Shown one piece after another: positions 13,112 through 60,747 of a DNA stretch of 64,000 bases (positions are counted from its first letter, which is position 1; each line of letters begins with the position of its first letter). The notes beneath the pieces were generated by a model. It was not told the origin of the DNA, ran no database searches, and was given only the letters and a program-made list of their open reading frames with translations. The DNA comes from Nageia nagi (Eukaryota > Plantae > Pinophyta): assembly GCA_050084985.1 (NCBI GenBank), contig JBITNC010000001.1, forward strand, positions 140,740,001 to 140,804,000, given 5' to 3'. Both the position numbers and the translations under genes were made by a program.

Positions 13112-13365
13112 ATGGCAGCAGAGAAACGTAGTAGAAGTAGCAATCCAACTGCAAGATCTCCATCTTCATCTCCAATTCGACCTAGCTTCAGCAGATCACC
13201 GGTTCGAACCACATCCAAATCTCCCAATTCCAAACAGCAGGAGAGCGGCTGTAGAAGCAGCAGCAAAGATCTAAGCATTGATATCTGCAAGGATTTCACC
13301 AAACGGCGCTGTAATCGTTTGGACTGCAAATACGCGCATCCGCCTGCTGTTATGGCCGTTGAACA
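13112..13365 (+). CDS. Muscleblind-like tandem CCCH zinc-finger protein, coding exon 1 (Ser/Arg/Pro-rich N-terminus + ZF1)
   Basis: GC-rich ORF MAAEKRSRSS...DICKDFTKRRCNRLDCKYAHPPAVMAVEQ (C-x7-C-x4-C-x3-H); predicted GC donor CA|GCAAAT at 13366 joins in frame to exon 2. Confidence 0.85.
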
Positions 13366-15509
13366 GCAAATATTAATCTTTTTCTTCCATACATTTTTGC
13401 TTTTCCGATCATACTCTTAATCTTTCCAACTAAAGGTTTGAGAAAATGCAGCAATGGAGGTACATAAATTAGCAAGGAGTTCTGTTGAAATGGAAACACA
13501 ACAACTTTATTTTGTATATCTAGGACGGTTGTGTCCCAATTTAGTGCTTGGAGAACTACATTAGGCATTACACAGTTTAGGGTTGCTTGTAAGGTTTGAA
13601 TTTGGGCTTTAGGATTGTAAGGGCCTCAATTTAGCACTCAGAGAACTAGTAAACTACTAACTTTTGTTTGGATGGGTATGCTCAATATGACTTTTCTCCC
13701 TTTCATTTAATTTTCAATCGGCTATATCTCTGTATAATTGAACACTGAATTCAGCCAACAATACAGCACATAAATGAAATTACATGGTTCATGCGCCTGC
13801 TTTAGCTAGAAACCGTATTATGTTTGCAATAGCTCTACCACCCCTTCCATTGACAGGAGCTGCAATTTGTTGTATGGCTGGAACTGTGCCTATGACTTAA
13901 GTAGGCACTCTGAAATGTTTCATTGTTGGGGGAAAGTTGAAAACTCCTTTCCTATGAGATGTCCGCTGTGATTACTCACTCTCAAAACAATGCATGACTT
14001 CCCATTACATTCATTGTCTCCTCATTTACACCTCTTTGGTGTGTTTATAGGTTATACTTAGCAGTTGTGTCTCTGCATTCTGCTGAAAAAGAATTTAAAA
14101 CATTTACTAGCATATTTTTATTATTCGTTTAAGAATGATCAACAAACAGTGACCTTCAATGTTATCATCATCCATATTTATATTATCCAAATGCACTTAA
14201 AAAGCTGCATTACTAAGTTATTACTATATGACTTTGATGATAAAAGTCTTCAAGCCTTTGTTTGTTGCTTGATTTATGTTTTCCCTTTTGAAATGGTTAT
14301 GATTAGAAATACTCATTTAAGAACATGGCTTTCCAAAACTGTTGACATCTAAGTTTGATAGGCCTCCAATAACACTCAAAGGGCAATGACTTCTTCTTAA
14401 GAAACTTCAGAATCTTCAGCTAGAATAATTGGACTCTATAGACTTAAAAGAAAGATTATCCTTACAAAATCCTCATTACACACATGACTCACATCATCAA
14501 GATAATGCATTTTACCGTCATTGTGGACACTAACATGGCCCCCCATCATCAAGGATAGAAGGTCCAAAAAGCTTACCATGATCTTCTTAATGGTGCTTCC
14601 AAAACTTTGAAAAGTTGACTTAACATCTTGAAAACTAGCCTTATTGTCCTCAAAAAATGTTTCTGGTTTTACTAGAAATTGAATACATACACAGGCCTTC
14701 AAATATAAGAGCATATCTAAAAATCAAACATACATCATGACCATCTCGAGACTCTATAAACATACATGCATCAGTCAAACCTCTTGATGTCTCAATAAGT
14801 TCATAAAATAGACGATCATGATCAACAATTTGATACTCACTCATGTGGTGTTTATTGTAGCCTTGTAACATTAAAAAGGCAGTTATTTTCTCGACCCAGA
14901 AATTGGTTTTTGATGTGTTAAGGGTCAGTAGTCAATGTTTGCAAGTGAAAGGAAGAAGAAAATTCATCCTTAGGCTTAGAGGTTCCAAAGTGTGCTTAAA
15001 AATATATTTAAGACATGGGTATATGATAATATAAGGTCCCAGAAATAGGAAAAGAAAAAGTGTCTTTTTCAATGTGGAAGATTGAAAGACACTCAAGGGG
15101 TAAAGCAATACAAGTGTCATCTTCTCATAAAGCAAGAAAATTACTCAGATATTTGGAGAAGATTCAAAGAAAAAGGATTTCAGATTTTTCAATATGGATA
15201 ATAGTAATTATGAAGTGTTTTTTGGATTTACTTTTGTAATGGGTATCTTCAAGTTAAATTTCCAGTGCAAAATGCGGGTGAGATGTCTTCAAGTTTCTAT
15301 GTTTGAGATCTGATTATTATTTTCAAATCTCGGTGGAATTTGTGGTGAAGATTGTTGCATATAGTATCTTGGTTGTTGCTTCTCTAGCTAAAAGAGAAAT
15401 TTGGATTAGTTATACTTTGCAATCAAATATTTTGTCAGAGGATTAAAATCGCTAAGCATAATTTTTTAATATCATTTTCGTCATCTAGATAGGGAAAACA
15501 ATTTATTAG

Positions 15510-15513
<4 letters not shown>

Positions 15514-15556
<43 letters not shown>
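15514..15556. repeat. (TA)n microsatellite at insertion site of Copia C
   Basis: ~21 TA units directly abutting the LTR. Confidence 0.95.
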
Positions 15557-15558
<2 letters not shown>

Positions 15559-18500
15559 AAAATTGCAAATTGATTGTTCTCATTACATTAAACAAATGTT
15601 TACATCAAGTATATATAGTTTTGTGATCATAACTGAAATACCAAAAGACTACAAATCTACTGTTTGAGAATGGTATTCTCATGTACAAATACAACCAAAT
15701 AAAGATCAACTAAATTACTACAAAATAGTCATGAAATCCTTCTAGAATACACACCAAGCCACTACAATATAATCACACATGTTCTAGACTATCATAACTG
15801 CAATCCACATGAAGTATGCTGCTCACAAATAAAAAAAAAACATGAATTAAATGGACAAACTGGAAAACTGCCAAAAATACTTACGAAATGTGCATGCTAT
15901 GAAGAAATGCCCCCACGTTTTGGAAGTGAAATGCATTGGGTACAAAATGCACATGTGTTTCCTGATGAAATGCCCTAGGTCTTCGCATTTTTTTAGTAAC
16001 TGGACAAAATATATAAAAAACAAGTTGAATTGCTTGGTCACTTAGTTCAATTCTCAACATTCTCCCCTTTGATGTTGAGTGGACTTACTAGAGAGTTCCT
16101 CAACTTCAAAAATTGAGCTTTGATAATCCCTTTTGTGAAGACATCAACAATGTTATCTTGGGTGTTACAATGTCTTAGCTCAATTCTATTTTTTTCCACC
16201 ATGTCATAAATGAAGTGGTACTTCATATCCAAATGTTTGGACTTCCTGTGGTAAATTGGGTTCTTTGCCAACTAAATGGCACTTATGTTGTCACCAAAAA
16301 AGATAGTTGGACCATATTGTTTCTTACCAATTTCTTCAAATACTTTTCTAAACCACAATGCTTGAGCACTAGCACTTGTGATTGCAATATACTAAGCTTC
16401 TGTAGAAGATAGAGTAATTGTACTTTGTTTTCATGAACTCCATGTAATCATTCCAAGCCCAAGACTAAAGCAATCCCTTGATGTACACTTTCTATCATCT
16501 AAATTACTTCCCCAATCCGAATCACTAAAGCCAACTAGTTTCACATCATCTTTTTTGAAATAATGAATACCAAAATCAGTTGTACCTTTCACATACCTCA
16601 GAATTCTTTTAGCTGCTTTCAAGTGGATTTCAGAAGGGTCACTCATATATCTTGATACCAGTGAAACAAAATGTGCAATATCTGGTCTAGAATTTGTGAG
16701 AAACATCAAGCTCCCAACAATCCTTCTATAAGTGGTCATATCAACTTTGTCAATCCCATCATCCTTACACAATAACTCACCATGAGCTATTGGTGTTGGA
16801 ACTAGTTTACTATTCTCCATGCCAAATTTCTTCTACATATCATTAGCATATTTAATTTGAAAAATAAAGATCTCACCTTCTCTTTGATACACCTCCATAC
16901 CAAGGAAATACTGCGTCAAACCTAGATCTTTCATTTCAAACTCTTGCATAATTGCATTTTTGAAATCATCATTTATCTTTGAACAACTATCCATGTAAAT
17001 GAAATCATCAACATATAAACAAACAAGAAGAATTTCATTAACTTCTTTCATGAGATATAGGGTAGGTTCACTCTTGCTTCTTGTGAAGCCATGTTGATGG
17101 AAGTATCCATCAATCCTTGAATACCAAGCTCTTGGAGCTTGCTTGAGGCCATACAAGGTCTTCTTCAATCTATACACAAAATCTTCTTTTCCTTTTATTT
17201 CAAAACCTTAGAGGTTGTTGCACATAAAGTTCTTCGTCCAAATAGCCATTCAAGAATGCACTTTTAAAATCCATATGATGTATCTTCCAACCTTTATGGG
17301 TAGCTAAAGAAAGTACCAACCTTATTGTTTCTTGTCTTGCCATCGATGCAAAAGTTTCCTCATAATCAATGGCATACATTTGTGTGAATCCTTTTGCCAC
17401 AAGCCTTGCCTTGTGCTTCTCAATTTTCCCATCACTGCTATACTTGGTCTTGTAGACCCATTTAGAATCCACACACTTTTTGCTTTTTGGAAGCTCTACA
17501 AGCTCCCAAGTATCATTCCTTTTTATGGAATTGATTTCCTCTTCCATTGCTTTCATTCACAAATCATTAGTACATGCTTGTTCATAACTAGATGGTTCTA
17601 ATTCAACACTAGTCATCAAAGCATAGTTAACAACATCACTTCTAGGTTCACCATTATCATCATCACCCTACATTCTCAAATTTTCAAGTCTTGTCACAAC
17701 TTGATCTATCTCTTGTGCTTGGCTTCTTGTAAGTCTTCTTTGAAATTTTGTGTCTAACAATTGATAAGATGGATGGCTTGAAAGTGTTCTCTTACCTTTC
17801 TTTGTCTTCACACTATTTGGAGAATCATCATCACTCAATGAAGGGCTTGAAGAAGAACTTGTAGATGAGCTCTTTGTTGGACTTGGAATGGAAATTTGCT
17901 TGCTGGCTTGAACATTGGACTGCACATTTGAGGGGCTTTTACCATTGGATTCATCATCAATATGGAGTTTTTGATGACCATACATTCCCCCTTCCCCCTT
18001 CATCAAAAATTACATCTTTAGAAACAATAATCTGCGAGTTTTTGGATTATAAAGCCTATAGGCTTTGGTATTCTCATAATACCTAGTAAAAATGCATGCC
18101 TCACTTTTTGGATCAAGCTTTCTTCTTTGTTCATCAGGTATATGTGCATAAGCTAAGCAACCAAAAAATTTGAAATGATTTAAATTTGGTTTCTTTTCAT
18201 ACCATGCTCACATGGAGTGATGTCTTCTAAGATGCTAGTAGGACTACTATTCAAGATGTAGACTGCTGTCCTAACCGCATCAGCCCACTATATATTGCTC
18301 AATCTCTTTGTTTGTAGCATGCTCCTTGCCATCTCAACAACTATTCTATTCTTCCTTTCGGCCACTCCATTTTGTTTTGGAGTGTAGGCAATTGTGAGTT
18401 GCCTTTTAATTTGACAATCTTTACAAAATTGGAGAAATTCATTTGAACAAAATTCTCCACCTCTATCAGTCTTTAAACATATTACATAGCATCCACTTTG

Positions 18501-19314
18501 GTTTTCAACATGATTTTTGAAATCTTTAAAACAATCAAATGCCTCATCTTTGGTTTTCAACAAATAGACCCAACACATTCTTGAAAAATCATTAATAAAA
18601 TTATGAAAGTATGAATTCTTACCCAAACTTTTAGTTTGCATTGGCTCACAAATGTCAAAATGCACCAATTGAAGTGCATAAGAGGCTCGCCATGCTTTCC
18701 TTTTAGGAAAACGCATCCTTGAGTGCCTAAACAAAGCACATCCTTCACACACATCTTTGTGATCCTTAACCTTAGGTAACCCATATACCATTTCTTGAGA
18801 TGTCAACAATCTCAAACTAGTGAAGTTCAAATGACCATACTTAAAATGCCATAGCCACCTTTTGTTCTCAATGGAAACATTTGCAAGTTGGAATCGCTGC
18901 CCTCCAAAGTTTAAAGGAAACAATATATTTTTACTCATAGGGACTGTTGTGACCAGCCTATTATCATGATTTTTATCAAAGATTACACACTTACTATCTT
19001 CAAAAACTAACTTGTAGTTTTTCTCCATTACTTAGTTTACACTCAACAAATTATGTTTCAAATTTGGAGTATAGTAAATATCATTTACCTTCTTTTGGCT
19101 TTCATTGGTGTTCACCTCCATGGCTTCTATGCCTTCAACTTCCAATGCTTTGTTATCTTCAAGCTTGATCTTGGACTTGTAGGAGTTGTCCATTGTAGCA
19201 AACAACTCCCCTTGTCGGTCATGTGAAGAATCCACGTCTTTTGTAAATTCTGATCAAATTTGCTATATATCAAGAACAAATTTGAGGATCCTTCTTCTTC
19301 TCCATACTGTGCAT

Positions 19315-25769: not shown

Positions 25770-26499
25770 ATATAATATTATTCTAATAAAAAATTTCTTA
25801 TTGAGCATACTATGGCAAAATTGTTGATAATGGACAACCTTATTGCATTGATAGATCATAGGATTAGAGAAGAGGGGACGATTATATTTGATCCATTGGA
25901 GGAGATTGATAACAAGGAAAACAAATGGTGGTACATCTTTATTAGATCTACATGTAATAGTTGTTTGAGCATGCTAACTCTTATATAATAGTTTTTTTGT
26001 GTGTTTTTGGGTTAAAAATAGTATTGTAACAACACATCAACATGTTACTTAAGGTTACAAGTCAACCTATTCTACTAACGATATAGGACCTTCCATTATT
26101 TTTCACCACCTATATTGTATTAAAATAATGTTTAAATCACAAAGTCAAAGTGAAATCAGGTAGTTTAAATACAAAGGACACCTCCCTTATATATTAGATA
26201 TGGTAGTTATTACTTTCAATTTCATTGTAGATTGTTGGTAAAATAATGTTCTGATTTCATCTATATATATATGTGTGTTTTCCTTGCTAAGAAATACATA
26301 GACAGACTGATCATTTTGATCATATTCTCTGTCTACTGTGTCTGAACTTCTGCTATTTTGATTTTTATACATGGAATCAGAGCATGTTGTGACTGTGGAC
26401 ACGTTGACTATGGATGTGTTTATGATGGACACATGTTGCCTAGATTTTGTCTGGAGCTGCTGCCTACTTCTGTCCATGCTGGTTAAGCACTTGCAGGTT

Positions 26500-29170: not shown

Positions 29171-29174
29171 CTTT

Positions 29175-41469: not shown

Positions 41470-41880
41470 GTATTATACTTGAGAATTTGCCATGGAGTGA
41501 TAGTGAGAATTTAGCAGAAGTTAATATAATGAAGCCACAGATATCACGACTGGTTAAAGGTGATTATGAGTCTCGGATCTTAATGATGAAGACTTTTGGA
41601 CGCTTGCGTATGCCTGACAGGGGCAAGGAAATAGAAGCAACAACAGAAACCATCTCAATACTTATAGAGATGATGAACAGTGAAGATCATGAAGGATATC
41701 TTGCAGCAATTAATGCTCTTGAAAGTTTGTCATCTGTCCTGTTCATAAGCAGAATAGTTGATAATGTTGGAGGTCTTCAAGGTCCTCGTCAAGCAACTGA
41801 ATTCTGCAAAATCTTCAAAAAAATTTAAAACAGGTGCCGCACATGTACTGGCTAACATATTCAGTGCCACTGTAAATGAC
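41470..41880 (+). pseudogene. ARM-repeat (PUB43/44-like U-box protein) fragment captured in element E
   Basis: ENLAEVNIMKPQISRLVKGDYESRILMMKTFGRLRMPD, TISILIEMMNS..AAINALESLSS and AAHVLANI resemble plant U-box ARM repeats. Confidence 0.55.
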
Positions 41881-41899
41881 TATGCAGGAAAGACTTATC

Positions 41900-42180
41900 T
41901 TAAAAGTGCATTTGAGGCAATTTGGAAGATGGGAGACCATTCTATTTTGATAGATATCATCAGCGTTCTTAATGAAAAAAACACAGTTTTCATATTGGAG
42001 ATTTGTGCAGTTATTCTTCCATTGTTTACAGATTTGCTCAAAAGCGGAATTGACAGGTACCTCAACGAGGCTTTAGGAATGTTGCTTGTTTTAGTCAAAT
42101 TTTTTGGTGATGTCATATGTGCAATCAGGAATGCATCCCCTTCTGTAGGAGTTGATATTCAAGCAGAAGAAAGACTAGAA
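41900..42180 (+). pseudogene. Katanin p80 C-terminal (con80) domain fragment captured in element E
   Basis: KMGDHSILIDIISVL..LEICAVILPLFTDLLKSGIDRYLNEALGMLLVLVKFFGDVI..SPSVGVDIQAEERLE matches the plant katanin p80 C-terminus; contiguous (intronless). Confidence 0.8.
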
Positions 42181-43759
42181 GAAATATTGATCAGGCTACA
42201 AACCACTGATAAGGAAATTGAGTCTTAAGAAAGACCTAAATGCTTTGTACAAATGTTTTGAACAGTGCAACATTGAGAAGAAAGTGGTTGAAGAGAAAAT
42301 GTACCAGTTTGAATCTTTAGCATGCAAGAAGATTGATGAGGTTGTTGTTTATGAAGCAATTGTGAACTGGATATTTGAACAACATTTTGAGATGGAAGAC
42401 TTTGGTTGGAAGAAGACATACAAAGAGTTTGTGGGCAAACATTTCATGGCTGCGTTTTGTGTTAATTACGCATGGAGCATTGTTGTTGATGCTGATATAC
42501 TATTGATTTGGGACCCTAGGATTACAGTTGATTTCCATTGGTTTAGTTAGACAATGCCAAGAATTGTGTTCTGCATTGCTTAAGGACAAGCAATTTCTGA
42601 AGGGGAGGATTGTAATGTCCCTAAATAATTCTAGCATTGTAAATATGTTTTTTTTTGGTGTTTTGTGTGTTGGGTGTCATTGAGGGTATTTTGTCATATT
42701 TCGAGGCTAAAATGAGAGTTGTAAGGGTAAATAAATGTGTTGTGTGCTAGTTCAAATGTTAGTATATGGGTTAGGAAAGTTATTTAAGTATTTGGATTGA
42801 GTTTTGGATTAGAAAAAGATATTAATTTATGTCTCTATGTGGAGTGCCGTTTTTGTATTATGTTTAAGAGATCTCAACGCAAGATTATATCGTAGCCCTC
42901 AGATCTTGTGTGTACGAGATCTAATCTCAATCCTTCATAATTAGATCTAAGGTTGGGATTTATCCTAGCATTAGGTTTAAGGAATAAAAGAGCTTAAAGA
43001 CTTCATTTTGTGTGTTTTGATGATTTGGAGATTGAATTGGGAGAACTTTAAAGAATTCTTATACTCATAGGGATAACTGGAAATATCTCTCTGAGTTTGC
43101 GGGGTTCCTATTGGATTTACTCTAGTGGAGGCTAGGCCAGGCCAGCTAGCTCTCTACCTATTTACATCTGACAAACCTAGCTAGGGTTTATGATTTGAGC
43201 ATAATTGTGAGCAAGATTGGAGGATATATTGTTGAAGGAAATTATATCAAGCTAAGAGAAGGACAATTAAGGAGTTTTGAGCATTGTTTCTCATACAGGA
43301 AGCCTTCATAGCTAGACATTAGCCTCTAGGAGGCATATTTGCGTGTAGAATAGGCTAAAACTACTTTAGCCAGCCAAACGCCTGCCTCTCAGGAAAGGTT
43401 TTGCATCTCAGAAGGGTCAGATCAGCCTATGTCAGTGTGACATTAGCTTCTTAGGGTCATATTTGAGGGTTTTGAAGGTCAAAGTTTGCTAGAATTACCA
43501 AATGTCTCATGCATTAGGGCAAATTGGTGATAAATTGCAGTGTTCAAGAGCTCAATTAGGGTTTGGAGGTAGTTTTTGTTATTTGGCTGTTATTTCTATT
43601 TGTTGTGATCTCTGCTAGGGTTTATTTGTGAAAGAAAATTAATAAAAATTACAAATATATTTCAGATCTGATTTGTTTTGTCAGGAATTGTATTTTGGGT
43701 ATTTGTTTTTGTGTTTGACACATTACATCTCCTTCAACAATTGACAATTTAAATTTTGT

Positions 43760-44400: not shown

Positions 44401-45043
44401 TATTTTATTATGGTCAAGGGATCATGATTCTAAGGTTCCAAACAGGGAAAGCAATTAAATTATTTGGGGTAGAAATGACTTTGTTAGAATTTGTAATGAA
44501 ATATTGTGAATATCTAAACTCCTTGTAAGTTCAATTAATCACTTAAAGGATATGTAGATACCTTAAGGGATTAATTGAATTCTTTATTATGTGTGGACTT
44601 TGACCTAACCATGGGGTTAGTTGGTAGGTTAAAGTTAGGTCACACATTTATTGTAACCCTAACCTTACCCTTGGGTTAAAGGGAGGTTAGGGAGGTGCTC
44701 TCAAGCTATAAATAGAGGGCCTCTCCTCTTGTAACATATCTAAGTTTTGGAGTAAGAATACTCTACTAGTTTGTGTAGGAGAGAGGAAGAGAATAGTTGT
44801 AAGAGCGGCATACTTGAGAATTGAGATACTAGTTGTGGATGTACTCCCAAGGAGGGAGGAACCACATTACACTTGTGTTATCTTGTGTGAATGTTGTGTG
44901 ATTGAGCTTCCTAGTCTTGGACCTTGAGGATTAGAGTAGTGCTAATTCTCTCAATTGGTATCTAGAGCTTGGTGTGGAAGCTCTTCTACATTTTGGAGGT
45001 TCTTCATCCTTCTTCATTCCTCATCTTACACCCCATTGGTGAG

Positions 45044-48000: not shown

Positions 48001-48130
48001 CCCCAACTTTATTCTTCTACGGATCATGGTTATAAGTTTGCACATGTGGGACATGTTTACTTATGTTGATTTGTATAGATGGAAACTTGTAAAAATTTTG
48101 CATTCTTATTGCATATTTACTTTTGTACAG
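45044..48130 (+). other. Predicted spliceosomal intron in the 5' leader of Copia B
   Basis: GAG|GTAAAT at 45044 and TTTTGTACAG|ACAATG at 48130; copy A has the joined sequence CATTGTTGAG|AAAATGG at 5884/5885. Confidence 0.85.
45789..46278 (+). pseudogene. Captured 5' fragment of a chloroplast WCRKC-type thioredoxin-like gene
   Basis: PTSIDMEAITSEEEFDKVLAQAQ*RSQPIIID* resembles the segment preceding W(M)A.WCRKC in plant thioredoxin-like 3 proteins; preceded by a broken transit-peptide-like ORF from ATG 45789. Confidence 0.7.
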
Positions 48131-50445
48131 ACAATGGTTGAAACCTTCATACCCAAGCACATACTCGACGGTTCCAACTTCGGCATATGGGAACCTCGTA
48201 TGAGAGCTGAGTTACAGGCAAGGAAGCTATGGCAGACAATAAATGAAGATCTAGTTGCTCCTACAGATGAGAAGGCCCTTGAAATTTACAACTCAAAAAA
48301 TGAGTTAGCAACCTCAATGATCTATCGTGCAGTTTCAGATGACATCCTTCTCATGATCTCTTCCTCGACATCAGCAAAAGAAGCTTGGGATAGACTAAAG
48401 AAAATTTACCTTGGGTCCAAATTTTCAAAAAGGTTCACCATTCTACAAAAGTTGTTGCAATATCGTCAAGGAGAAGATGAAAGTGCCTCAATCTACTTGA
48501 ACAAAATCATTGACCTCAGGACACAACTGGTTGGCTGTGGGTGCAATTGGATCAATGATGAGTTCATGGTCTTCATCATTCTTCAAAGCCTCTCTACAAA
48601 GTTCAGTAACTTTGTCACAGTTATGGAGACTAGGCTCGATGATGAAGAAGATGTTATCTCTCTTGACAATCTTTCTAGACTCCTTCTGAAGCATAAGGAA
48701 ACTTTGAACAAGAAAATGTTGAACATTTCTCCAAAGGATAATAGCATTGCTCTAGGAGCAACCAAAACTCCTTTCAAGAAGACGTTCAAACATTATAAAT
48801 TCAAAGACAACAAATCCTCATCTACCATCAGGAAGCACGACAACTTCAAGCAAAGGAAAGCTGGATCAAGCAAACCAACACCGCAGGAAAAGTTTGATGG
48901 AAATTGTAACTTTTGTGGCATCTTTGGGCACAAAGAGTATGATTGTCGCAAAAAGAAATTTGCTCAAAAAGGCAAGGGAAATGCAAATGTGAGAAATTTC
49001 AATAATAAAAAGAAGAACAAGCATGCTGCTACTGTTGCCTACTACTCAATGACAAACTATTTCAAATGATTGGATTATTGATTCAGGATGCACTAATCAC
49101 ATGTGTTATGAAAAGGATAAGTTTGAAAATTTTCATAAGTACAACAAGGATACAGTTGTGATAGGTGATAATACAGTCCTTGATGTTCAAGGAATAGGGA
49201 ATGTGAAGATTCATGGAAAGACTCTTGATAATGTCTTTTATGTGCCTAAACTAAGGATGAATCTTATCTCCGTAATTCAGATTACAAGGACAGGATGCTC
49301 ATTTGAGTTTACCTCACACTCCTGGTGTGTTAAGAAAGGACTTGCCACTTTGATGAAAGGATCAGTAAAGAATGACCTTTATATTGTGGATCAAGTACCT
49401 TCAAAGATTTGTCTTGCTACAAATGTGTGTTCAAAAGGTAATCTTTGGCATCAACGATTAGGGCACCTTAACCACAAGAGTATTCAAGATATGAAAAATC
49501 AAGAACTTGTAGAAGGTTTACCTAATATTTCACCCACAATTGGTCTTTGTGAAAGGTGCATTCTAGGAAAGATGAATAGGCAAAAGTTTGAAAAAGATAA
49601 GGCAACTCGGGCTACTCGTCCTCTTCAGCTTGTGCATTCAGATTTGATGGGTCCATTTCAGACTAAGTCTCTAGGGGGAGCTTTTTATGTTCTGACCTTC
49701 ATTGATGACTTCAGTAGGATGACATTTGGTTATCTACTTGAGCACAAGGATCAAACTTTTGACCGTTTTAAAGACTTCAAGGCACTTGTTGAAAATCAAA
49801 CTGATTTTAAGATCAAAATGCTGAGATCTGACAATGGGGGTGAGTATAATAGCAATGAGTTTAACGATTATTGTGTTAAACATGGGATCAAGCGACAATT
49901 CACAATCCCTTACACCCCTCAGCAAAATGGAGTTGCTGAAAGGAAGAATCGCACCATTATGAAAATGGCAAGATGCATGTTGGGTAACCTTCCTAGTTTC
50001 TTATGGGGAGAAGCTGTTCACACTGCTATTCACACCCTAAATAGGTGTCCTACTAAAGCAGTTGAAGGAAAAACTCCGTATGAAGCATGGACAGGAAAGA
50101 AACCTAACATCTCACACTTCAGGGTCTTTGGTTGTGATGCATTTGCCTTCATTACCTCAGAGAAAAGAAAGAAGCTAGACAAAAGATCAGAAAAATGCAT
50201 CTTTGTGGGGTATGATAATCAGCATAGAGGTTACAGGCTCTACTCCTCATCCCATAAAACAGTCTTTGTTTCTAGGGATGTCAAGTTCAATGAACTTCCT
50301 GAGGATACGACTTCTCATGCTGAGGTGTCTGATTCAGATGATTCTACGCCTGCACCTAACTGGTTGGATGATCATGTAGGGAAGTCACCACAAGAGCAAA
50401 ATTCTCCAGCTCAGAGAATTACAAGAAGTATGACCTTGAATAAAT

Positions 50446-52779
50446 GGGAAATCCAATTTTGTACAAGTTTCATGTTTTAAGTTTTTGAAAAAAAGTGGAT
50501 TTACTCCCTCAAAATCACAAAAATTGGATCAGCCAATGGGAGAGCATGAAAATTTTCCAAATTTTTCAAAATGATCAAAATCAAAATTGGAGAGAAAGGT
50601 AGGTGGCAAATCCAAAGATGATCAACATTGCCTCTTGCAAGTTTTCAAAAAACTCAAGATTTGCCTTCCAAAGAGTTAGGGGGGAGTTTTGAAAGTTTTG
50701 GGCCATTTCACCAAAGTTCCAAACATGCCCAAAACCTTCAAAACCTGTGCCAAGCATTAAGGGGGCTTAAAAGTTGTCAAAAGTGGAATTTGTGAGCTTC
50801 ATGGGGTGCAAAATTCAATTTTACACCATTTTGGTCTTCCAAGTTCATGATTTGGACAAGAAAAACTTCTCCAATCATTGATTTGCCCTCCAAAATGGAG
50901 AAAATCACAAAAAAAAAAAGTAAAAAAAAAAGAGAAAACTTCAAAATTTCAAAATTGTGTCTCAAGATCCAAAATTTTAGAAATCAATTTTGATGATTGA
51001 TTTGAGTACCCATTTGCCTTGTGAAGAAAATTGATTTGGATCCAAAAAAGTGAAGAAAAACACAAAAAATTCTCAATATCCAAGATCTAAAAGTTGAATA
51101 TCTTCACTTTTTCAAAAAAAAAAAAAAAATGAAAAAAAATAAAAATTGGAGATCATGTGTAGAATAAGGATTCAAACACTTTGGCCTTTGAAATTTTTGA
51201 AGAAAGAGGAAAATCATGCCCATTATGCCTAGGCGCTCATTTTCCAAGTTTTCCCACCTTTGGCCTCTCTTCTCAATATTGAGAATGAGTCGAAAACTCC
51301 AAAAATGCAAAAACACCTTATGGAGCCTCCAAAATGCCCCCTCATGAAAAAGCCCCAAATCCAATGCATAAAAGCTTCAAATCCTCTCAAAACTTCCCAA
51401 AAACCTTAAAATCCCATCCTTCATCCATCCATGGGATCAAATCCACTTTTTAATTTTTTTCCAAATTTCAAACCCCACCATCTTTTTCGAAAAATAGTCC
51501 AAAAATTCACTTTTTCAGAAAATTTGCTCAAAATTCCTTCGAAATTTGCCAGAATGATTACATCAAGGGCAAATCCAGATTGAAGAAAGGAGCTCAAAAG
51601 ATTGATGAACACATCTAGAATGACGATTTGAAGCTCCAAATTTTGCCAAATTGATGCAAAATGCCTCGAAATCCATGCTAGAGGGCATCAATTTTTGTAA
51701 ATAATTTATTTCAAGCATATTTTAGTGGGATGAGTATTGTTCTCCCACTAAACTATATTGTAATCTCAATTTAGCATTTAAATTAGCGTTTTAGTGTATT
51801 TCTAAAAATTTGGGCAACGCTTGAAAATTTGACCTAATTTCGGCTATAAATAAGACGCATGGGGTCTCATTTTCACTAGAGCTCATTTTGTAAAAAAAAA
51901 AGTGAAGCTTTTGTAAGAGTGGAGCAAATTGATGCATCCTTACACAACTCTTTTACAAGTTAATACATAGTGGTTAAGGCAAAGATCGAGCTTGTTTATC
52001 CATTTGTGGTGTTGTGAATTGTTCTTTAAGGATTATCATCGTTCGTTTGACACTTTTGCATCCTTCCTTTGAAAACTCGGGAGTTTTAGGGAAAGTATCA
52101 TTGCTTTATTTTTCTAAAGTGTTGGAAACCAGTCTTTGATAGTTGCTTGGTTCATAGCATGCATGTAGATGAGGTATTCTGAATTTGTTTCCTATTTTAT
52201 GACATCAAACTAGAGGTTTACATCCAAACTCTTGTTCTTCCCACATTCTTCCACCACGTCCATTTGGTTGCATTGGTCCTACTTGCAGAGTACCGACAAT
52301 CGACATTCCTACTTGCTCCTCTTTGGAACAACTTGAACATAGTTGTTCGCAAAGCTAGATGAATTGGATGAAATCCCTAAGCTGATCCAAAAAGGATGAA
52401 CTTTTTAGACAATACTTTATCATGGTGACCAGTTTGGTATCTGACCAAGTATCCGTTTCTGTTTCACAAGTGCAATCTCTCACTTTCTAGTATTTTCTTT
52501 ATGTTTTATTTATGCTTTCAAACCCAAATACAATCGTTAAGTCCACACACAGATATTTCGAATAAACTATATACATCAAATAAAACAACATCGGTTAACA
52601 GATTGCTACCTCTCATTCCATTCCATTGAGGCTGATTCCAAAGAGGGATACCGCACTTTCTTTTATCTATCCTTAGACGAGAAACACGCTTGGTGGGCAT
52701 ACCTTAAACGTCATAATGTTGGGTCGCTGAGTAAGGTGTTTCGACAAGAGCCTTGGAGGTAAAAAGTCCTTTTCAAACA
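50446..52779 (+). mobile_element. 3' part of a long Gypsy-type LTR fused to truncated Copia B
   Basis: Abrupt switch to A-rich non-coding repeat at 50446; TATA-like CTATAAATA ~51844; LTR-like end ..AAGTCCTTTTCAAACA at 52779; no TSD. Confidence 0.6.
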
Positions 52780-54585
52780 GGGGAATTGGTAATGCATTCC
52801 TGAATATGTTGCTTGGGATCTCTTGAGTTCTGTGCGCGATTTTCAGAGGGCCAACATGATGTCTGAAGTTTTTTTTTCAAGGAACCTAGAGCACAAATAG
52901 GATGGCAAAATCGGAACAGTTCCTCTTGTTTTCCATTTATATTCAAGAAGGAATATTTGTTCTAACTTGATCACCTAAACTTGAATCAGGCTGAAATTTC
53001 AGGTTTATCCTCTTTGTGGATGTCCCTGTGCAATGTATTAGTACCTAATAAAGAATCGGGCAAAAGTTCAAATTTGCATCAGGGTCATCTTAGCTTCTTT
53101 ATCTCACTAGATGATAAGACGATTATGACTTCAATACCTTTACGTGCATGCAAGAATAAAAAAATAACTGGCAATTTATATTACGCATCTTACTATTATG
53201 CAATTTATATTACGCATCTTACAATTTAGGAAACAAAAACGGTTGATCGAAAGCTATACTTTAAATAGATTTATTGTGAAATATTCCATTATGCAGTGAA
53301 TTGTGGCAGCACAGAATGGTAATAAGTGCATGACTGACCAATTCTGGTAAATGATAATAAGTGAAATCAGATGTTGTACACGTAATCTCAAGAGAGGCTT
53401 CTATAAAAATATAAATTTGTTTTCCATTTACATAGAGATCTTGAAGTTCTATCTAACTCGAAAGGCAGTTACTTTAATGACCTACATCTAGAAGATATCA
53501 AAATCACTTTAATTGTCTTTACCATTTGGATCATACACATTTCCCACAAGTGATTGAAACATTCCAGAGTCTAAGTTATTAGCTTCGTGGATTCTAATAG
53601 GAATCTGAATATCTGGATCATGTGATCCTTGATACGAGAGGGCCAAATGGCCTAAAACTATCTGAGTTTGCAGTGTTTTTTGTTCTAAAATTTACGATTG
53701 TGGTTGACATTACTTTTGAATTGCTTGCCTTCCTGTTCTGGCATCTCATTACACTTTTCTTAGAGTTGTGGAGGACATTGAGACATTTGGTTTTCTCTTT
53801 CGCATGTGTAGGCTCTGACCCATCTCTGTCATCTTGGAAGAGCTATCTCTAAGATCTTGTTTGTCCATTTTCAACTCACATGTTGACTATGTTCTGAAAA
53901 CATCCAACTCAGTTCTTTGTGGTGCTCAAGCTCTCTTTTAGAAAATCACCTTCCAGTTGCAATCAATAAATTGAGTTTCTTGCACAGTGGACTTGATTAA
54001 GCCTTAGGGATATCTATTTTGATGAGTAACTGGTATTCTCTGACCTTATGGTAAGGGCTTTGACAGAGAAATAGTATACAGGATATTTGAGTAAGAGCAA
54101 GAGCACAAGCTGTATAGAAGGCTCTTATGTTTTCATCAGATCTCAACAATCTAAAAAACTAAATTATACGTTTTCTAGGTCCACCATAAGAAAATCAAAT
54201 ACGTAATTCTGTGAGTAGAAGAGTCATGAAAGTAAGTGCACAAAAAATCATTTTGAGCTTTTGTGAAGTAATTACTTTTGTGTTAAATCCCCATTTCACG
54301 CATTAAGTGTTTCTGTTACAATATATTTTATAAAAATATGAGTATTGACCAGGCCTTAATAGATGTACACATTGGAAGTTGGAAATGTTTGTAGGATTAC
54401 ATGCAAGTAATTTGTGAACTTTTTACAGCTGGTATATAATCTTAACTTGTGTCGATGCCTAGGATATTGTGTTAGATAGTGTGAGATTCTTTGCTAGATA
54501 GTTTCTTATTTTCTTTTTAATGACAATGATAAAACTTGATGGCAAACAGAGAGCTGCGTTGACTTCTCCGCTGCCATACTTTCAG

Positions 54586-54678
54586 GAATAAGGTGACTGT
54601 ATGCTTTGATTCTCTCCGTGACCGTTGTTTACGAGGCATTAGTTGTCGCTACTATCATCCTTCTTCACAGATTCGGGT
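54586..54678 (+). CDS. Muscleblind-like gene exon 2 (ZF2)
   Basis: TTTCAG|G..GT|GTAAGT; encodes NKVTVCFDSLRDRCLRGISCRYYHPSSQIR (cf. MBNL [22 protein letters not shown]). Confidence 0.92.
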
Positions 54679-54927
54679 GTAAGTTTTTTGTTTGATATAT
54701 CGGAATTGACATTACAATTATTGTCTTGTAAACTGTTTATGCTTTTAAAGTTCCAACACTTAAGCTTGAGTAATTAATGATAAAATAACATACAAAATCA
54801 TATAGTTCTGAGAGGAGTGGGAGAAGAATTGTTGGTTAAATCACAAGATTATTTATTTTTTCTTTAGGTGACCTTTAAATTCTTTAATGTCCAAAATAAA
54901 TAAACTTTTTACTCTCTATCTTTTCAG

Positions 54928-54991
54928 GTCATTGCAAGAAGCAGCTGGCATCCAACCATCAGCTGTTCATTTAGGCTATCAAGTTGATGTG
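54928..54991 (+). CDS. Muscleblind-like gene exon 3
   Basis: TTTTCAG|G..GTG|GTAAAT; phase-compatible, (V)SLQEAAGIQPSAVHLGYQVDV. Confidence 0.85.
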
Positions 54992-55133
54992 GTAAATCTT
55001 TCCATTGTTGTACTTTAAAGTCAATCTAGAAAAAGGATGAAATTGATTTCCATTTATTGGTCCATAACATATTCCTTAACCAACATTGGAAGAACCATGG
55101 ATGATATATTCTTTTGTTTTGTTTGTTTTCCAG

Positions 55134-55238
55134 ATCAGGCCATCAAATTTGTTCTTTGTGCCTCCTGGATTGCCACATCCGTTATCAGTTTTGACATCTT
55201 CATCTTCTTTGAAGACTTCAACCAAGCTTGCAATTGAG
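55134..55238 (+). CDS. Muscleblind-like gene exon 4 (linker)
   Basis: TTTTCCAG|ATC..GAG|GTACAT; 35 codons IRPSNLFFVPPGLPHP..TKLAIE. Confidence 0.85.
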
Positions 55239-55433
55239 GTACATTTTGTATGCTAAGGTACATGTTTTTTTCATTAATGTGAAGCTAAGGATGCTTGAAT
55301 TCAATATTTGAGTTGTACTTGCACTTCATAGATATTCTCATAAGCCATGTAAAAAATATGTTGGGATTATCTCATAAAAAGTACACAATGCCAATATAAA
55401 TAAAGAACATGAACTATACTATATTGGGCAGTT

Positions 55434-55630
55434 TTTTTTTTTTTTTTTTTATTATGGTAGAGAAGGGCTTTTGAAAGGATTCCCGCACCTTTTTACATTT
55501 AGTGTGTTGACAGTTGGTGCATATATCTGTTTGTAGAGCGTCGGACTTGTACCTAGGACTCCATTTACAACAGCTGGGAGTTTCCACACCTAAGGTTCAC
55601 CAACTCCCCTAACAAGTGTAGATCTCATAG
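55434..55630 (-). mobile_element. tRNA-derived SINE in intron 4
   Basis: T19 tail 55432-50; TSD GGGCAGTT on both sides; minus-strand B-box-like GGTACAAGTCC; ~200 bp. Confidence 0.7.
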
Positions 55631-57856
55631 GGGCAGTTCAACTTCAGAAAACATACACATTTTCTTCCATATTGGACTTTTTCCACAAGTCTCAAAGTGC
55701 AACTGATCAATCTATACAGTATAGTCACTCATTCAAAGTTATAATTAAGATCTCTTGTTATTCTTTTCCCAACTCATACTGTTATTGCCAATCTAAGTTG
55801 CCAACGACCTTATTCATCAGCATTTTTTTATCATTATTAATTATCTTGGTACTTCTCAAGCTGGTCCCTCACTTGGGACTCCTGATGAAGTTATTCTGCC
55901 GTCAGTCTTGTTAGAGTTGACAAGATTATATAATTGCTGTGGCTTGCAATTAGTCTTCATAATATTAGTTACTAATATTGTATCATATTTGACCTTCTTT
56001 TGTTAGTAATAATTAATTGATTGGATAGACCATAGATCTTCAATCTTGATGATATTATGAAAATATACTAATAATGGATTGAGCAGTTATCAATATTTAA
56101 GTTGCTTGATTGAATTTTAGCATGAACTGTAGAGAGGAGGATTTGTTTATGCTAGTGCCATTTACTTTCTTCTCCAATCTGCTGTTTCTTTGCTAGAGAT
56201 CATCCTTCTCAGTACCTGAATACATTCATGGCATAGAACTACAATAAGGATATGTATTTAATAAGCATTGCAATCCTACTCAAGAACTATATAAATGTAT
56301 TCAAAATCCCCTTTAATGCTCCCGGGGATAACTGGAGTATAACCATCACCAAATTTATTGAGGCACCTCCTTAACAGGGACCATGTTATATACCTACCTT
56401 CTCTACCCCTCTCGCTTTATTTCTCTTTCATCTACTTTCTCATCTTATGTTTACTTGCATCTCTTTTTTAGTCTGTATCCTTAACTGCTTATGGAGGAGT
56501 GCTCACCTAAAATATTTGGTGCTTTTCTTACATGTGTTGTACTTGTATGAGTATCCAAAGTCCTTTGATATGGGCACCTTTGGTACTTCTCAATGTGTCT
56601 ATTTTTTCTTGTGCTTCGATGTATCCTGGATGTAACATTGCAATATCTGGGATGGATACAGGTATAACATGGCAATTTCAGTACATATTCCAATATGCCA
56701 GTGCTCATTACTATAGAATGGATCATTATTTTGCCTGTCTTCTTGAGTTATTATGGCAATTTCATCTTTTGCCTATTGTTTGAATAAATGGAAGTATTCA
56801 AGACTTGAAGTTGACAAGATAGATTATGATCTACTAACACTGATATGAATCACTAGACGATATCTGGCTGTAGTCTCGATTGTGTCCTAAGTGGGCAATT
56901 TCAGTTGAAAGTTAAGGTAATTAATGTTGTTGGAAATATTTTAATTGCTAGAGTTGGTTTCCTGGAACAGAATGCTTTAAGATGCTTCTATCACAAATCT
57001 TACTTAAAAAATCCAATTCTGTTAATTGATTCTCATGCAAGGCTACCTTTAGAAGTTGTAATGACAGGCTTATAATACTATCCACTAGAGCGAGGCTAAG
57101 TATATGTATGTTATTTCTTCTTTACTGGATGTGTCCTTAGTGAAGGAAGGTGAATGCTATGCTGATTATTGATTGGACGGATATATTTATATCCATATCA
57201 GGAGCTGTCTCAGATTAATATCAATTAGATATATGTACGTTTTCATGCATATGTTTATATATGCATACATTTGTGAATATGTATCCTAACACGGAAGAAC
57301 ATTTACATGTAAAAACGGATCCATATCAAATCCCAGAGGTCCTTGAAAACTGCTATATCCACATCATTATCTGTCTCCATAACCTGGTAATTAAGGACTG
57401 TACTAAATTACTAGGTTTTTTATGTAACTTTGAATTATAAAAATGACTCAAGCTAGCCTTGTTAGGAATCCTCAAGTTGTGTTTATTTAAAATTGTTAAT
57501 TATGGTGGGATGAACTTTCTTTTTTCTGTTTTGTAATAATATGTTATCAATTTCTTTATCCATAATACAATCCAGGTGCATGACGTAGCATCCTTAATAT
57601 GGCATGTCCCCTACATTTCACGGTTGGAAATATTTTTTGACATTCCCCTGTACCTGAAACAAATGCATGTAGAAACTATATTTTAGATTCTCGGTGATGC
57701 ATCCTTTGAAATATTACTTTGAGTTGGCCATGTATAGTATGTAGTATACATAACTATATGTACAACAAGGGATATGTTGTGCTTGTAAATTTCGATATCT
57801 TATTAAATGTTTTTTTGTGCTTTGATCTGATATTTTGTTGTTTTTGTGTCTTTCAG

Positions 57857-57955
57857 GTTTGTAGGGATTATGTATGGGGGCATTGTGCAAGAGAACTAGA
57901 TGAATGCTGCTATGCTCATCATTCCCCAACTCCCGGGCAAGGAGACTATGCACTT
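57857..57955 (+). CDS. Muscleblind-like gene exon 5 (ZF3)
   Basis: TTTCAG|GTT..CTT|GTGGGT; VCRDYVWGHCARELDECCYAHHSPTPGQGDYAL (C-x7-C-x6-C-x3-H). Confidence 0.9.
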
Positions 57956-58891
57956 GTGGGTTTTCAACCTTTAAAATTACTTGAGATTTGCAGGTTTTGC
58001 ACTGTTTGTGGATCTTGTCATAGTGTTCTTGTTTTCTATTACCCTTTATTGAACAGCATAAAATACAAGCATATCAACCATTGTCTCTACATGTTAATTT
58101 ACTCTGTAAATTATTGTTGTTGCATAGCTTGGATACTACAAACATGTGGCATACACATGCTAAGAATGGGCATTTCAGTTTATAGCTGGGCAACTGTCTT
58201 AGTTCAACTTTTACAAAAACATTCTTCTCTATATTAAGTGTCAATATGTTTCTGCCAACTGTGACATCATGGATCTTCTTCCACTAAGGTTGCTTATTTT
58301 TGACCTGCCTCTGAATAGCAACTTTGAACTTACTAGTAACAGGGATAGCATTCTCTGTTTTTTGTTATTCTGAGTCTTCTTATTTTATGCTTTTGACAGA
58401 AATCAATCACAATGCTGCCTGAAGCTGTTATTTGGCTTCTTTGTATATTGTAGTATTCTATATGCTGCGAAGCACTATCAGAATCTTCGATGACAACCAA
58501 AATACGTAGAGTGATATTTGGGTGATTTATAGTCCATATAAAAATGTAAGTGTTTGTATTTTTCTGAAAGTTTGACTTCATAGTGAAGCTTACTAATCTT
58601 GTTATAATGCTCTTTGGCTTCAATAGAACACGTGAAAGCTTTTAAAAGGCACAAAAATTGGAATAAGTAAAATAGCTAGTGTGATTTCTTTGTTAAATCT
58701 GGTGTAGAAACTCTAATGGTCTTTTAAGAATGACTGGCCTGCAAGCTCTTTAGACCATTGCAAGGGCTCTTTTGAGTGCAAATGGTTTGGAAATGTTAGA
58801 AGGATTTAAATTTGACATGGTTGTAACTGATTTCTCACCAAGTCATTCAATAGAATGTTTTTTCTGATTCAGTTCTCTATTCAATTTGAAG

Positions 58892-58981
58892 GTCTGCAAT
58901 GATCACTTACGTGGAAAGTGTGAGCGGGATTCTTGTCGATATTTCCATACCCCAGAGCATTTAAGATCTCGCATTAGACAT
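58892..58981 (+). CDS. Muscleblind-like gene exon 6 (ZF4)
   Basis: TTGAAG|GTC..CAT|GTAAGT; VCNDHLRGKCERDSCRYFHTPEHLRSRIRH (cf. MBNL [28 protein letters not shown]). Confidence 0.92.
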
Positions 58982-59125
58982 GTAAGTATTCTGTTTTACT
59001 GTTCTACTTTGCTTTAAACTATGGCTGTGTTGTATATGTTTTGTAACTTAAAATACATGAAAATGCCATTCTGGTTATGCATATTTTGAGATTTGTTCTT
59101 GATTTTCAAAGGGGATTATATTCAG

Positions 59126-59221
59126 GTCACTGTTGGACCTGCTGCCACAATCAACTCTATTCATTGCAATTCCAGCGGAGATGCTGCTTATACATTTCGG
59201 CTGATTTCTTATGATAAACAG
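59126..59221 (+). CDS. Muscleblind-like gene exon 7
   Basis: TTCAG|GTC..CAG|GTTGAG; 32 open codons VTVGPAATINSIH..YDKQ. Confidence 0.75.
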
Positions 59222-59600
59222 GTTGAGTTCTTCCAAATTATTGAAGACTTCAATGCAATTGTGTTTAATTGAGAATAACTTTGATGCTATAATTCTGTAA
59301 TATGTTTATTGTTGACAATTTACAATGGTCAATCCTGTAGTTTCCAGAATGTACTGAACATGTTTTGTTAAAAGTAGATTGTCATCTATAACATAGAATT
59401 AGGAAAGTGTTAACGTGGTGTTTTGGCGCTGAGCTGCAAAAGATTGAACCTGTTTGTGCTTCAAGTTAAGTCTCAAGGGAAATAGCTTGGTTTGAACTTG
59501 ATGCAGTTACTAAATTTTGGTATAGGAAGGAGTCTTTTAAGTCTTTTTCCTCAATTTTATGCTTCTGATAACATGCAACCTACATTTTTGGTTTCTACAG

Positions 59601-59666
59601 TCTGTGAAACGAATTAGGACTAGAGACAATGCTGGTGATCATTTGTCAAGAGTACTGGCTTATCAT
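59601..59666 (+). CDS. Muscleblind-like gene exon 8 (donor uncertain: 59652, 59667 or 59676)
   Basis: TTTCTACAG|TCT; SVKRIRTRDNAGDHLSR(VLAYH); three in-phase GT donors. Confidence 0.6.
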
Positions 59667-59837
59667 GTGAAAAAAGTGATTTTATCTGCATCAATTTGTT
59701 TGAATCTAGGATTCTCATTATGTTTTTTGTGGGTTTCTTTGGCTTACTGAGGCTTCGTCAACAATATACATTTATGCATGTTTTCTAAGCTGCATTTTAC
59801 ATATTTAATTTTTGATTATTTCAGTCTTTATTTTCAG

Positions 59838-59925
59838 CAATATGGAGCACCAAGTTTTCAAGTTCCAGCAATTCATGGGCCACCTTTGGTGCAAGCTCCA
59901 CTTTTGCGGTCCCCAGATGTTGCGG
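59838..59925 (+). CDS. Muscleblind-like gene exon 9 (Pro/Gln-rich)
   Basis: TTTTCAG|CAA..G|GTAAAT; QYGAPSFQVPAIHGPPLVQAPLLRSPDVA. Confidence 0.7.
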
Positions 59926-60627
59926 GTAAATAAGATTTCCTTATTGATTTAAAAAGTACTTAATAAAACTTCTTTATATTAGATTGTGGATTACTTTTTC
60001 ATGGTGGATGTTTAATTGTCACTGCAAAGGTGAATGACATTTCTCTAATTTTGATCGTCACACATAATCTTTTCATTCTACCGAACTTTCTTGCTAGGAA
60101 CATGAAATGAATCCAAAGTAGGTTTGGAGTTATACCATGCACATCAGGGCTGGTGAATTAAGTGGGAATGAGATTTGATATGGCAATCTTGGTTTCAGCA
60201 ATCTTGGTTTCATATGATGGGGTGTGTAAAAAAGTCGCATATGTAACAATTCATTTTGAAAGTTTGTATGACGGATCTTCTTTGTTTATAGATTACGTAT
60301 GGGGTGTGTAAAATTTATTTTGAAAGCTTCTATGAAGGATCTTCTTTGTTTATAGATTATGGTAAGATGACATAGGTTTTATAATAGACTGAAGACATCA
60401 ATAAATCATGCAGCTATATCGTATAATACAATTTTTTTACCAATTCTATCATCATATAAAATTATGATTGCCCAAATTCTCTATGCTTTTAACCTTCTAA
60501 TTTCAAAAATATTATATCAAAATGGAAGAATAATGGTAACTACAAGGGATGATAAGCACATGAGGTATGTGGACATTATGTATGATGGAATGTCATGATC
60601 ATTATTTCATTTTGTCATTTGTCTCAG

Positions 60628-60665
60628 GTTGTCCCCCAATCAATCTTAAAAGGGGGCCTTTTTGA
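60628..60665 (+). CDS. Muscleblind-like gene probable last coding exon
   Basis: TTTGTCTCAG|GT, phase-1 compatible, (G)CPPINLKRGPF-TGA. Confidence 0.55.
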
Positions 60666-60747
60666 ATGTCTTTTGTATATGGTATGTCTAAATTTTTCTC
60701 ATGGAAAACCTTTGTACGAATCCAATGTAGATGCTTTGAGAAGGCAA

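Follow-up and report, generated by a model that had tools for sequence, protein, structure and literature searches.

We analyzed a 64,000-nucleotide (nt) stretch of the Nageia nagi genome (contig JBITNC010000001.1; the whole stretch is called the window below, and all coordinates are based on it). Its plus strand probably carries coding exons 1-9 of a gymnosperm orthologue in the C3H28/muscleblind-like family, the plant counterpart of animal Muscleblind (MBNL), and the transcripts of this gene would undergo regulated unproductive splicing. The locus is a real, transcribed, heavily alternatively spliced multi-exon gene. The full gene would encode about 380-400 residues with six CCCH (Cys-Cys-Cys-His) zinc fingers (ZF) arranged in three tandem pairs, of which the last pair would lie 3' of the window.

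Fingers, coding exons and the plant family

Scanning of all six frames of the 64 kb with the pattern C-x6-9-C-x4-6-C-x3-H revealed four good CCCH motifs, all on the plus strand, namely ZF1 (13286-13339), ZF2 (54602-54658), ZF3 (57860-57919), and ZF4 (58895-58948), plus one chance match at 19547. The CCCH peptides quoted in an earlier, sequence-only reading of this DNA were all recovered where it had placed them, and the window contains no other set of this kind. All zinc ligands of ZF1-4 (16/16) are kept, and every finger exon matches the Pfam family zf-CCCH_10. Three finger exons were used as queries against solved structures, and MBNL1/2 was the best match for each of them: E 3e-10 for the ZF1 exon, 1.4e-9 for the ZF2 exon, and 1.7e-12 for the ZF4 exon, the top structure of the latter being MBNL1 ZF3/4. 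The next family, CPSF30, appeared at E 0.005 or worse. The preference of the finger exons for MBNL1/2 is far beyond chance.

With exon 1 as the query, a profile-free HMMER search of 1.84 billion representative proteins yielded 309 matches, mostly proteins with several fingers, and a natural full-length match (P0016) used as a query led to a streptophyte family. Its members were found in (i) Mesostigma and Closterium and three liverworts, including a Marchantia record named 'muscleblind', (ii) Selaginella, Diphasiastrum, and Ceratopteris, (iii) the gymnosperms Ginkgo (Gb_26006), Picea sitchensis (D5A899), Cryptomeria (SUGI_0477560), and Taxus, and (iv) monocots and magnoliids, where they are called 'zinc finger CCCH domain-containing protein 28' and include the six-finger rice protein OsC3H28 (LOC_Os04g35800). 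The family is already present in databases, where the Marchantia and JGI records bear the label 'muscleblind' and a catalogue entry for rice OsC3H28 dates from 2008. The earlier suggestion of a regulator retained in this plant lineage is not supported, as the family is streptophyte-wide, from Mesostigma to rice.

The six fingers of the family form three pairs with the spacing [7,6]-14-[7,5]-~64-[7,6]-13-[7,4]-~100-[7,5]-14-[7,4], where brackets give the Cys spacings within a finger and the numbers between them are linker lengths; angiosperm C3H28 members have extra middle fingers. The window gene fits this architecture: the window contains fingers 1-4, exons 2-5 give the distance between ZF2 and ZF3, and the starts of fingers 5 and 6 were obtained from the loose ends of transcript contigs described below. 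Gymnosperm proteins were laid out on the window by tblastn. The window gene is orthologous to them, because exons E1-E9 (Table 1) are collinear with their sequences exon by exon, including regions outside the fingers. The phases of these exons are compatible. The nine exons form an open frame of about 296 codons with no stop. Of the ten phase-compatible exons proposed in the sequence-only reading, the first nine are supported, exon 8 by homology only, and the tenth (60629-60665) found no support. Identities were summed exon by exon and never on a joined protein, and natural orthologues served as full-length proxies. The alignment of exon 1 with the Cryptomeria and Picea N-termini begins at Met1 (45/84 residues identical to Cryptomeria), exon 2 shares 27/30 residues with Cryptomeria, exon 6 shares 26/30 with Picea, and the exon 8 candidate is identical at 12/22 positions to both Cryptomeria and Taxus. 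Outside the fingers, the residues shared with gymnosperm members include the N-terminal MA(A/G)EKR and the motifs SLQEAAGIQP, IRPSNLFF.PPGLPHPL, and QYGAP.FQVPA.

The region immediately upstream of exon 1 has a CpG observed/expected ratio (o/e) of 1.1-1.36, compared with 0.29 for the whole window, and belongs to the top ~4% of 300-nt windows. Together with exon 1 (12600-13365; CpG o/e 0.83-1.36) it is the most CpG-rich stretch of this CpG-depleted window, and we regard the CpG-rich 5' end of exon 1 as a putative unmethylated-looking, promoter-like sequence. The assignment of exon 1 as the first coding exon is well supported by the Met1 alignment and by this CpG-rich location.

Exons E2-E9 are 63-69% identical to the Cryptomeria, Taxus, Picea, and Ginkgo proteins, and identity between those lineages is 64-69%; hence there is no acceleration, and the gene evolves at a normal rate. 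Of the 33 alignable positions at which the family does not vary between Mesostigma and Ginkgo, 30 are kept. The window gene shares with the family the finger order, the linkers, and the exon-by-exon collinearity. It differs in a two-residue deletion in ZF1 (x6 to x4) and in several Arg losses; the lineage-specific changes in ZF3 are R>W, R>H, and CRYAH>CCYAH, and the changed codons TGG, CAT, and TGC are those that CpG transitions in Arg codons would yield. It also differs from the family in its very long introns filled with transposable elements and in the stop-carrying alternative exons of its dominant transcripts. Accelerated evolution, or a decaying paralogue, was rejected as the principal explanation on account of the ordinary divergence, and is retained as a rival below.

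Kinship with animal Muscleblind

Profile-profile alignment (hhalign) of 17 non-angiosperm streptophyte members with 14 three-pair animal MBNLs gave a probability of 100% and E 6.8e-70 over 319 collinear columns that cover all three pairs, whereas ZC3H10-like proteins aligned with one pair only (71 columns, E 4e-14). With a plant orthologue as a query, cnidarian MBNLs were retrieved at E 1e-55 over about 78% of the query, versus ~1e-7 for ZC3H10-named proteins. We further built a maximum-likelihood tree of 76 finger pairs on 66 columns, with few outgroups (Caenorhabditis ZC3H10-like, Botryococcus, Amoebophrya) and no human sequences. In this tree, the 70 plant and animal pairs are set apart from ZC3H10, Botryococcus, and pair 2 of Amoebophrya (85/99, on a long branch). 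Plant pair 3 and animal pair 3 form one clade with support 98/90; pairs 1 and 2 show no resolved grouping between kingdoms. At the family level, these comparisons support the assignment of the gene as MBNL-type rather than ZC3H10-like, in agreement with the sequence-only reading.

Structural comparison was made with an AlphaFold model of the Ginkgo orthologue, which is not the protein of the window. The model has a predicted local distance difference test score (pLDDT) above 90 in the three pairs. In a Foldseek search against the Protein Data Bank (PDB), its ten best matches are all MBNL1/2 tandem-finger domains with 40-43% identity, and its pairs superpose on the MBNL structures 3D2N and 3D2Q with a TM-score of 0.84-0.87 (normalised to the target) and a root-mean-square deviation of 1.2-2.2 A. 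Only MBNL was found at E <1e-3, and CPSF30 was next at E 0.14. The ESM Atlas also listed MBNL clusters first, which we treat as a lead only.

Many MBNLs of invertebrates and basal animals (sponges, cnidarians, tunicates, hemichordates, arthropods, and molluscs) have three pairs; they include proteins of a sponge, corals, tunicates, a hemichordate, mosquitoes, a lobster, a snail, and ticks, and have the spacing [7,6]-14-[7,4/6]-~100-[7,6]-16-[7,4]-~150-[7,4]-15-[7,4]. They and the plant proteins have the same three tandem CCCH pairs in the same order, and their near-common spacing can be written as [7,6]-14-[7,4/5/6] for the first pair, [7,6]-13..16-[7,4] for the second, and [7,4/5]-14..16-[7,4] for the third. 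Both families have the CFDSL motif in finger 2, HL(R/Q)..(I/V) after finger 4, and D.LPVCRDF and V.V.D..VT.CRD in pair 3, and the fold of the pairs is common to both, as judged from the Ginkgo model. The plant family differs from MBNL in the x5 spacing of finger 2 (not x4/x6), in a ZF3-ZF4 linker of 13 residues (not 15-16), and in unrelated inter-pair linkers. Where MBNL has the LEV box, RD/KWLxLEVC before finger 1 (Oddo et al. 2016, PMC5041496), the window reads KDLSIDIC; the hydrophobic residues at -5, -3, and -1 are kept, but the invariant W is absent, as it is from the plant consensus.

Two further differences from MBNL, the x4 spacing of ZF1 and CCYAH in ZF3, were seen at this locus. The sequence-only reading had claimed that the ZF3/ZF4 spacing, the CFDSL motif, and a 14-residue ZF1-ZF2 linker are shared with MBNL. 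The claim applies to ZF3 [7,6], ZF4 [7,4], and CFDSL, with a 13-residue ZF3-ZF4 linker on the E5>E6 junction, which is supported by homology and unseen in the contigs. ZF1 [7,4] and ZF2 [7,5] are small deviations from the MBNL pattern, and their linker has the claimed 14 residues only if the joint 13365>54586 is used.

ZC3H10 is of the same zf-CCCH_10 type and has one pair that aligns to plant pair 3; it differs in its spacing ([7,5]-14-[7,4]-37-[7,6]), in having three fingers, in the 71 aligned columns, in its long branch, and in far weaker scores. CPSF30/CPSF4 is the next-best solved CCCH protein, and it differs by E >=0.005 in sequence and >=0.14 in fold, by five fingers with other spacing, and by the lack of paired architecture.

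Several observations concern the distribution of these finger pairs. The third pair of many non-mammalian MBNLs, including those of lamprey (P0006), Sycon (P0003), and tunicates (P0022 and P0029), aligns with the plant third pair, and in two-pair proteins of Oscarella and Geodia the second pair is a domain of the 'pair 3' type. MBNL-like [7,4]-16-[7,4] pairs were also seen in the euglenid Eutreptiella (P0034) and in Amoebophrya (P0013), a parasitic dinoflagellate relative. The finger-pair type may be much older than plants and animals, and contamination of the transcriptomes is possible.

In the literature, Muscleblind is treated as animal-only: plants are described as being without any protein resembling MBL (Oddo et al. 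2016, PMC5041496). Homologues from plants are not a topic of a 2026 review on MBNL. We found no description of a plant MBNL homologue in the searchable library.

Transcripts of the locus

Transcript evidence was taken from Logan contigs of four public runs (X1-X4) of one organism, which come from four studies. The contigs were compared with the stretch 54570-60569, so that exon 1 and 60629-60665 lie outside the comparison, and exon borders taken from contig joints were corrected for ambiguous bases. In each of the four runs, 6-10% of the 31-mers from 54500-60700 are present, the share that spliced mRNA would give. The spliced contigs match the window with 100% identity and no mismatches in all four runs. 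They confirm seven junctions, including the GT..AG joints 54678>54928 (in three runs), 54991>55134, 55238>57857, 58981>59126, and 59221>59838. The last of these skips the exon 8 candidate in every contig; the skip keeps the frame.

Between ZF3 and ZF4, the contigs of all four runs include a 146-nt cassette exon. The joint 57955>58400 was observed in X1-X3, in X4 a loose end at 57955 reads into the same exon, and the joint 58545>58892 was observed in all four. Inclusion of this exon shifts the frame and leads to a stop after 17 codons.

At the 5' side, a contig of X2 contains, as a loose end, a sequence ending in CACTTGCAG joined to acceptor 54550. In the window, the 9-mer CACTTGCAG occurs only once, at 26488-26496, with GT directly after it. 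The bases 54570-54585 are covered by contigs from both X1 and X2, and the X2 loose end matches 54547-54569. The X2 joint thus shows that an exon inside the '41-kb intron' of the sequence-only reading is spliced 36 nt upstream of acceptor 54586, and this intron is not single but interrupted by at least one used exon. The exon, named 1b, has a CpG o/e of 0.12 and is not promoter-like.

At the 3' side, contigs that pass 59925 encode either DEDTLPVCRD, the start of finger 5, or VDNYVTICWD, the start of finger 6, both matching ZF5/ZF6 of the orthologues; those that go from 59925 directly to VDNYVTICWD skip the finger-5 exon and are shifted in frame. The loose-end sequences could not be located in the window, even when 2-3 mismatches were allowed. 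Since the ZF5/ZF6 sequence follows 59925 and yet is absent from the window, the gene extends beyond 64000 and has six fingers. A third finger pair is present in every orthologue, and the window itself contains none.

The assembled (dominant) isoforms thus carry an extra 5' exon joined to an acceptor upstream of exon 2, which brings in a stop in frame, as well as the 146-nt stop-carrying exon between fingers 3 and 4, and some contigs skip the finger-5 exon with a shift of frame. The splicing pattern would most likely mean regulated unproductive splicing that limits an RNA-binding regulator. On this view, transcripts with the productive junctions E1>E2 and E5>E6 would be a minority hidden from the contigs.

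YGCY clusters were considered as a sign of autoregulation and rejected: 4/11 of the densest 200-nt windows lie at alternative exons, but none is significant against local dinucleotide shuffles (P 0.08-0.35).

Table 1. Features of the gene in the window
Feature	Coordinates	Strand	Content and evidence
Putative promoter and 5' untranslated region	12600..13111	+	CpG-island-like; inference only
Exon 1	13112..13365	+	ATG, Ser-rich N-terminus, ZF1 (C-x7-C-x4-C-x3-H), first 9 of the 14 ZF1-ZF2 linker residues; ends in phase 2
Extra upstream exon 1b	26293..26496	+	3' end from contig, 5' end guessed from an acceptor-like site; non-coding or stop-carrying
Alternative 5' extension of exon 2	54550..54585	+	In-frame TGA at 54560-54562
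Exon 2	54586..54678	+	Last 5 linker residues and ZF2 (CFDSL motif, C-x7-C-x5-C-x3-H)
Exon 3	54928..54991	+	Inter-pair linker SLQEAAGIQP...; joints on both sides, homology
Exon 4	55134..55238	+	Linker, end ...KLAIE; joints on both sides in four runs
Exon 5	57857..57955	+	ZF3 (C-x7-C-x6-C-x3-H); joints, alignment
146-nt cassette exon between ZF3 and ZF4	58400..58545	+	Contig joints; 'poison exon'
Exon 6	58892..58981	+	ZF4 (C-x7-C-x4-C-x3-H) and HLRSRI tail; joints
Exon 7	59126..59221	+	Linker towards pair 3; joints, homology
Exon 8 candidate	59601..59666	+	22 in-frame codons encoding SVKRIRTRDNAGD...; homology only
Exon 9	59838..59925	+	Last coding exon inside the window; ends in phase 1; joint and loose ends at 59925/59928
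Intron leaving the window	59926..64000	+	ZF5/ZF6 exons beyond 64000; loose-end sequences unmatched in the window

The introns contain several other elements. Part of the long first intron is filled by Copia-type gag/integrase open reading frames (ORFs) at 18288-19028 on the minus strand and 48026-50480 on the plus strand (rve, gag_pre-integrs, Retrotran_gag_2), and two further ORFs in it have host-gene domains, Helicase_C (39796-40440, E 6e-27) and Katanin con80 (41758-42228, E 2e-25). The intron between exons 4 and 5 harbors a short interspersed repeat at 55434-55640 with a poly-T run, which reads as poly-A on the minus strand. Within it, 55558-55623 is matched by contigs of RNA-type runs with 3-4 mismatches and depths up to about 2100, so that the transcript data must contain many further copies of the repeat; a tRNA origin was rejected, as ARAGORN found none. 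The last intron contains ORFs of 192 codons (62285-62863) and 222 codons (63021-63689) with no Pfam match.

Competing explanations and meaning

A number of observations weigh against the explanation proposed above. Neither the joint 13365>54586 nor any use of acceptor 54586 was seen in the contigs, and where the sequence-only reading expected a transcript joining 13365 to 54586, the X2 contig shows 26496>54550 instead. The donor of exon 1 is a GC with poor flanks (CA|GCAAAT). Of the exon borders, seven junctions were confirmed in the four runs, whereas the direct joint 57955>58892 between ZF3 and ZF4 occurs in none of their contigs, the 146-nt exon being inserted there; every assembled isoform that was seen would be truncated by a stop. 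In a collection of 5.8 billion proteins, no full-length protein of the same species was found at 46-147 and 230-772 amino acids (aa), the Cryptomeria orthologue as a query covering 243-772 aa, ranges that leave out 147-230 aa, where the product of the poison exon (~222 aa) would fall; a query with the 84 aa of exon 1 likewise gave no same-species protein at 46-147 aa. Changes have occurred at three sites that otherwise do not vary between Mesostigma and Ginkgo, including the Arg after the third Cys of ZF3, which we take to be a position contacting RNA in the MBNL1-RNA structure. Finally, RNA binding and a splicing role in plants are putative, and the RNA nature of the runs is a guess ('RNA?'); the contigs are without introns, and so their source cannot be genomic DNA.

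One rival explanation is a transcribed gene that is losing its function, or a sub-functional copy, from which hardly any full-length protein would be made. We consider this unlikely. It would account for the premature stops in all contigs, the exonised pieces of intron, the weak GC donor, and the failure to find a full-length same-species protein in the ranges searched, and the substitutions at conserved sites would stem from a constraint relaxed under CpG decay: G92>R, R219>C, and P338>A affect invariant sites, R210>H a nearly invariant one, the start of ZF6 reads CWD instead of CRD as in the orthologues, and the Arg changes in ZF3 are all of the CpG-transition type in a window with the low CpG o/e given above. 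Against it stand the open frame over nine exons with intact, used splice sites, the retention of all zinc ligands in ZF1-4, an exon 1 with an unmethylated-looking CpG-rich 5' end, and a divergence from other gymnosperms no greater than that among them. The missing joints have to be judged by the nature of the contigs, which retain dominant paths only, so that minor isoforms can stay hidden and the absence of 13365>54586 is no proof against its use; poison exons are usual in splicing regulators. The joint 13365>54586 is also the sole one that reproduces the conserved 14-residue linker (...VEQ|NKVTVC; Cryptomeria VEENKVTVC). As a putative junction, it would stand on this homology together with the weak GC donor.

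Two other explanations appear far less probable. The gene could belong to a ZC3H10-like or another plant C3H clade, with a likeness to MBNL that arose by convergence of short motifs constrained by their Cys and His residues. The fingers are indeed short and constrained, the tree gives no clear orthology between the plant and animal pairs 1 and 2, and the outgroup sample is small. We nevertheless hold this explanation to be very improbable, given the ~1e-7 of ZC3H10-named proteins versus the 1e-55 of MBNL, the single pair aligned by hhalign (E 4e-14) versus three collinear pairs (E 7e-70), the plant and animal pair-3 clade (98/90), the linker lengths and Cys spacings common to all three pairs, and the Foldseek matches at E <1e-3, which are MBNL only. 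A four-finger isoform (about 330 aa) with 60629-60665 as its terminal exon, the product assembled in the sequence-only reading, has in its favor an acceptor at 60628|60629 with a fitting phase and a stop 12 codons on, and the contig comparison ended at 60569, before this exon. On the other hand, the contigs reaching 59925 all go on to ZF5 or ZF6 sequence, which the window lacks, the 12 terminal residues have no homologue, and the third pair is found in every orthologue. Such an isoform is hardly to be expected, and the four-finger product is contradicted by the six fingers of both the family and the locus's own transcripts.

We return to a gymnosperm C3H28/muscleblind-like gene under regulated unproductive splicing as the probable explanation. 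The streptophyte family to which it belongs would be the plant counterpart of animal Muscleblind/MBNL. The fingers of MBNL1 each recognize a GC step of single-stranded RNA, with two sites placed back to back in a pair. By homology, each plant finger would bind a GC-containing (YGCY-like) element in single-stranded RNA, and the protein would regulate splicing or other mRNA processing. A more far-reaching proposal is that the C3H28/'muscleblind' clade is a true MBNL orthologue derived from a three-pair ancestor of plants and animals, with reading of GC-containing RNA, control of splicing, and self-regulation via the stop exon between ZF3 and ZF4; we put it forward tentatively, as possible rather than probable.

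If a common three-pair ancestor existed, MBNL would not have arisen in metazoans. The plant family revealed here is conserved, apparently of a single lineage, and matches the three-pair architecture of animal MBNL finger for finger, which would place the origin of Muscleblind much deeper than the animals. This family-level point is independent of the window; the locus adds to the family a gymnosperm member with giant introns filled with transposable elements and unusually unproductive splicing, and not a new kind of gene. Plant RNA biology would gain a candidate splicing regulator that could be studied in tractable species, as Marchantia and rice both have a member.

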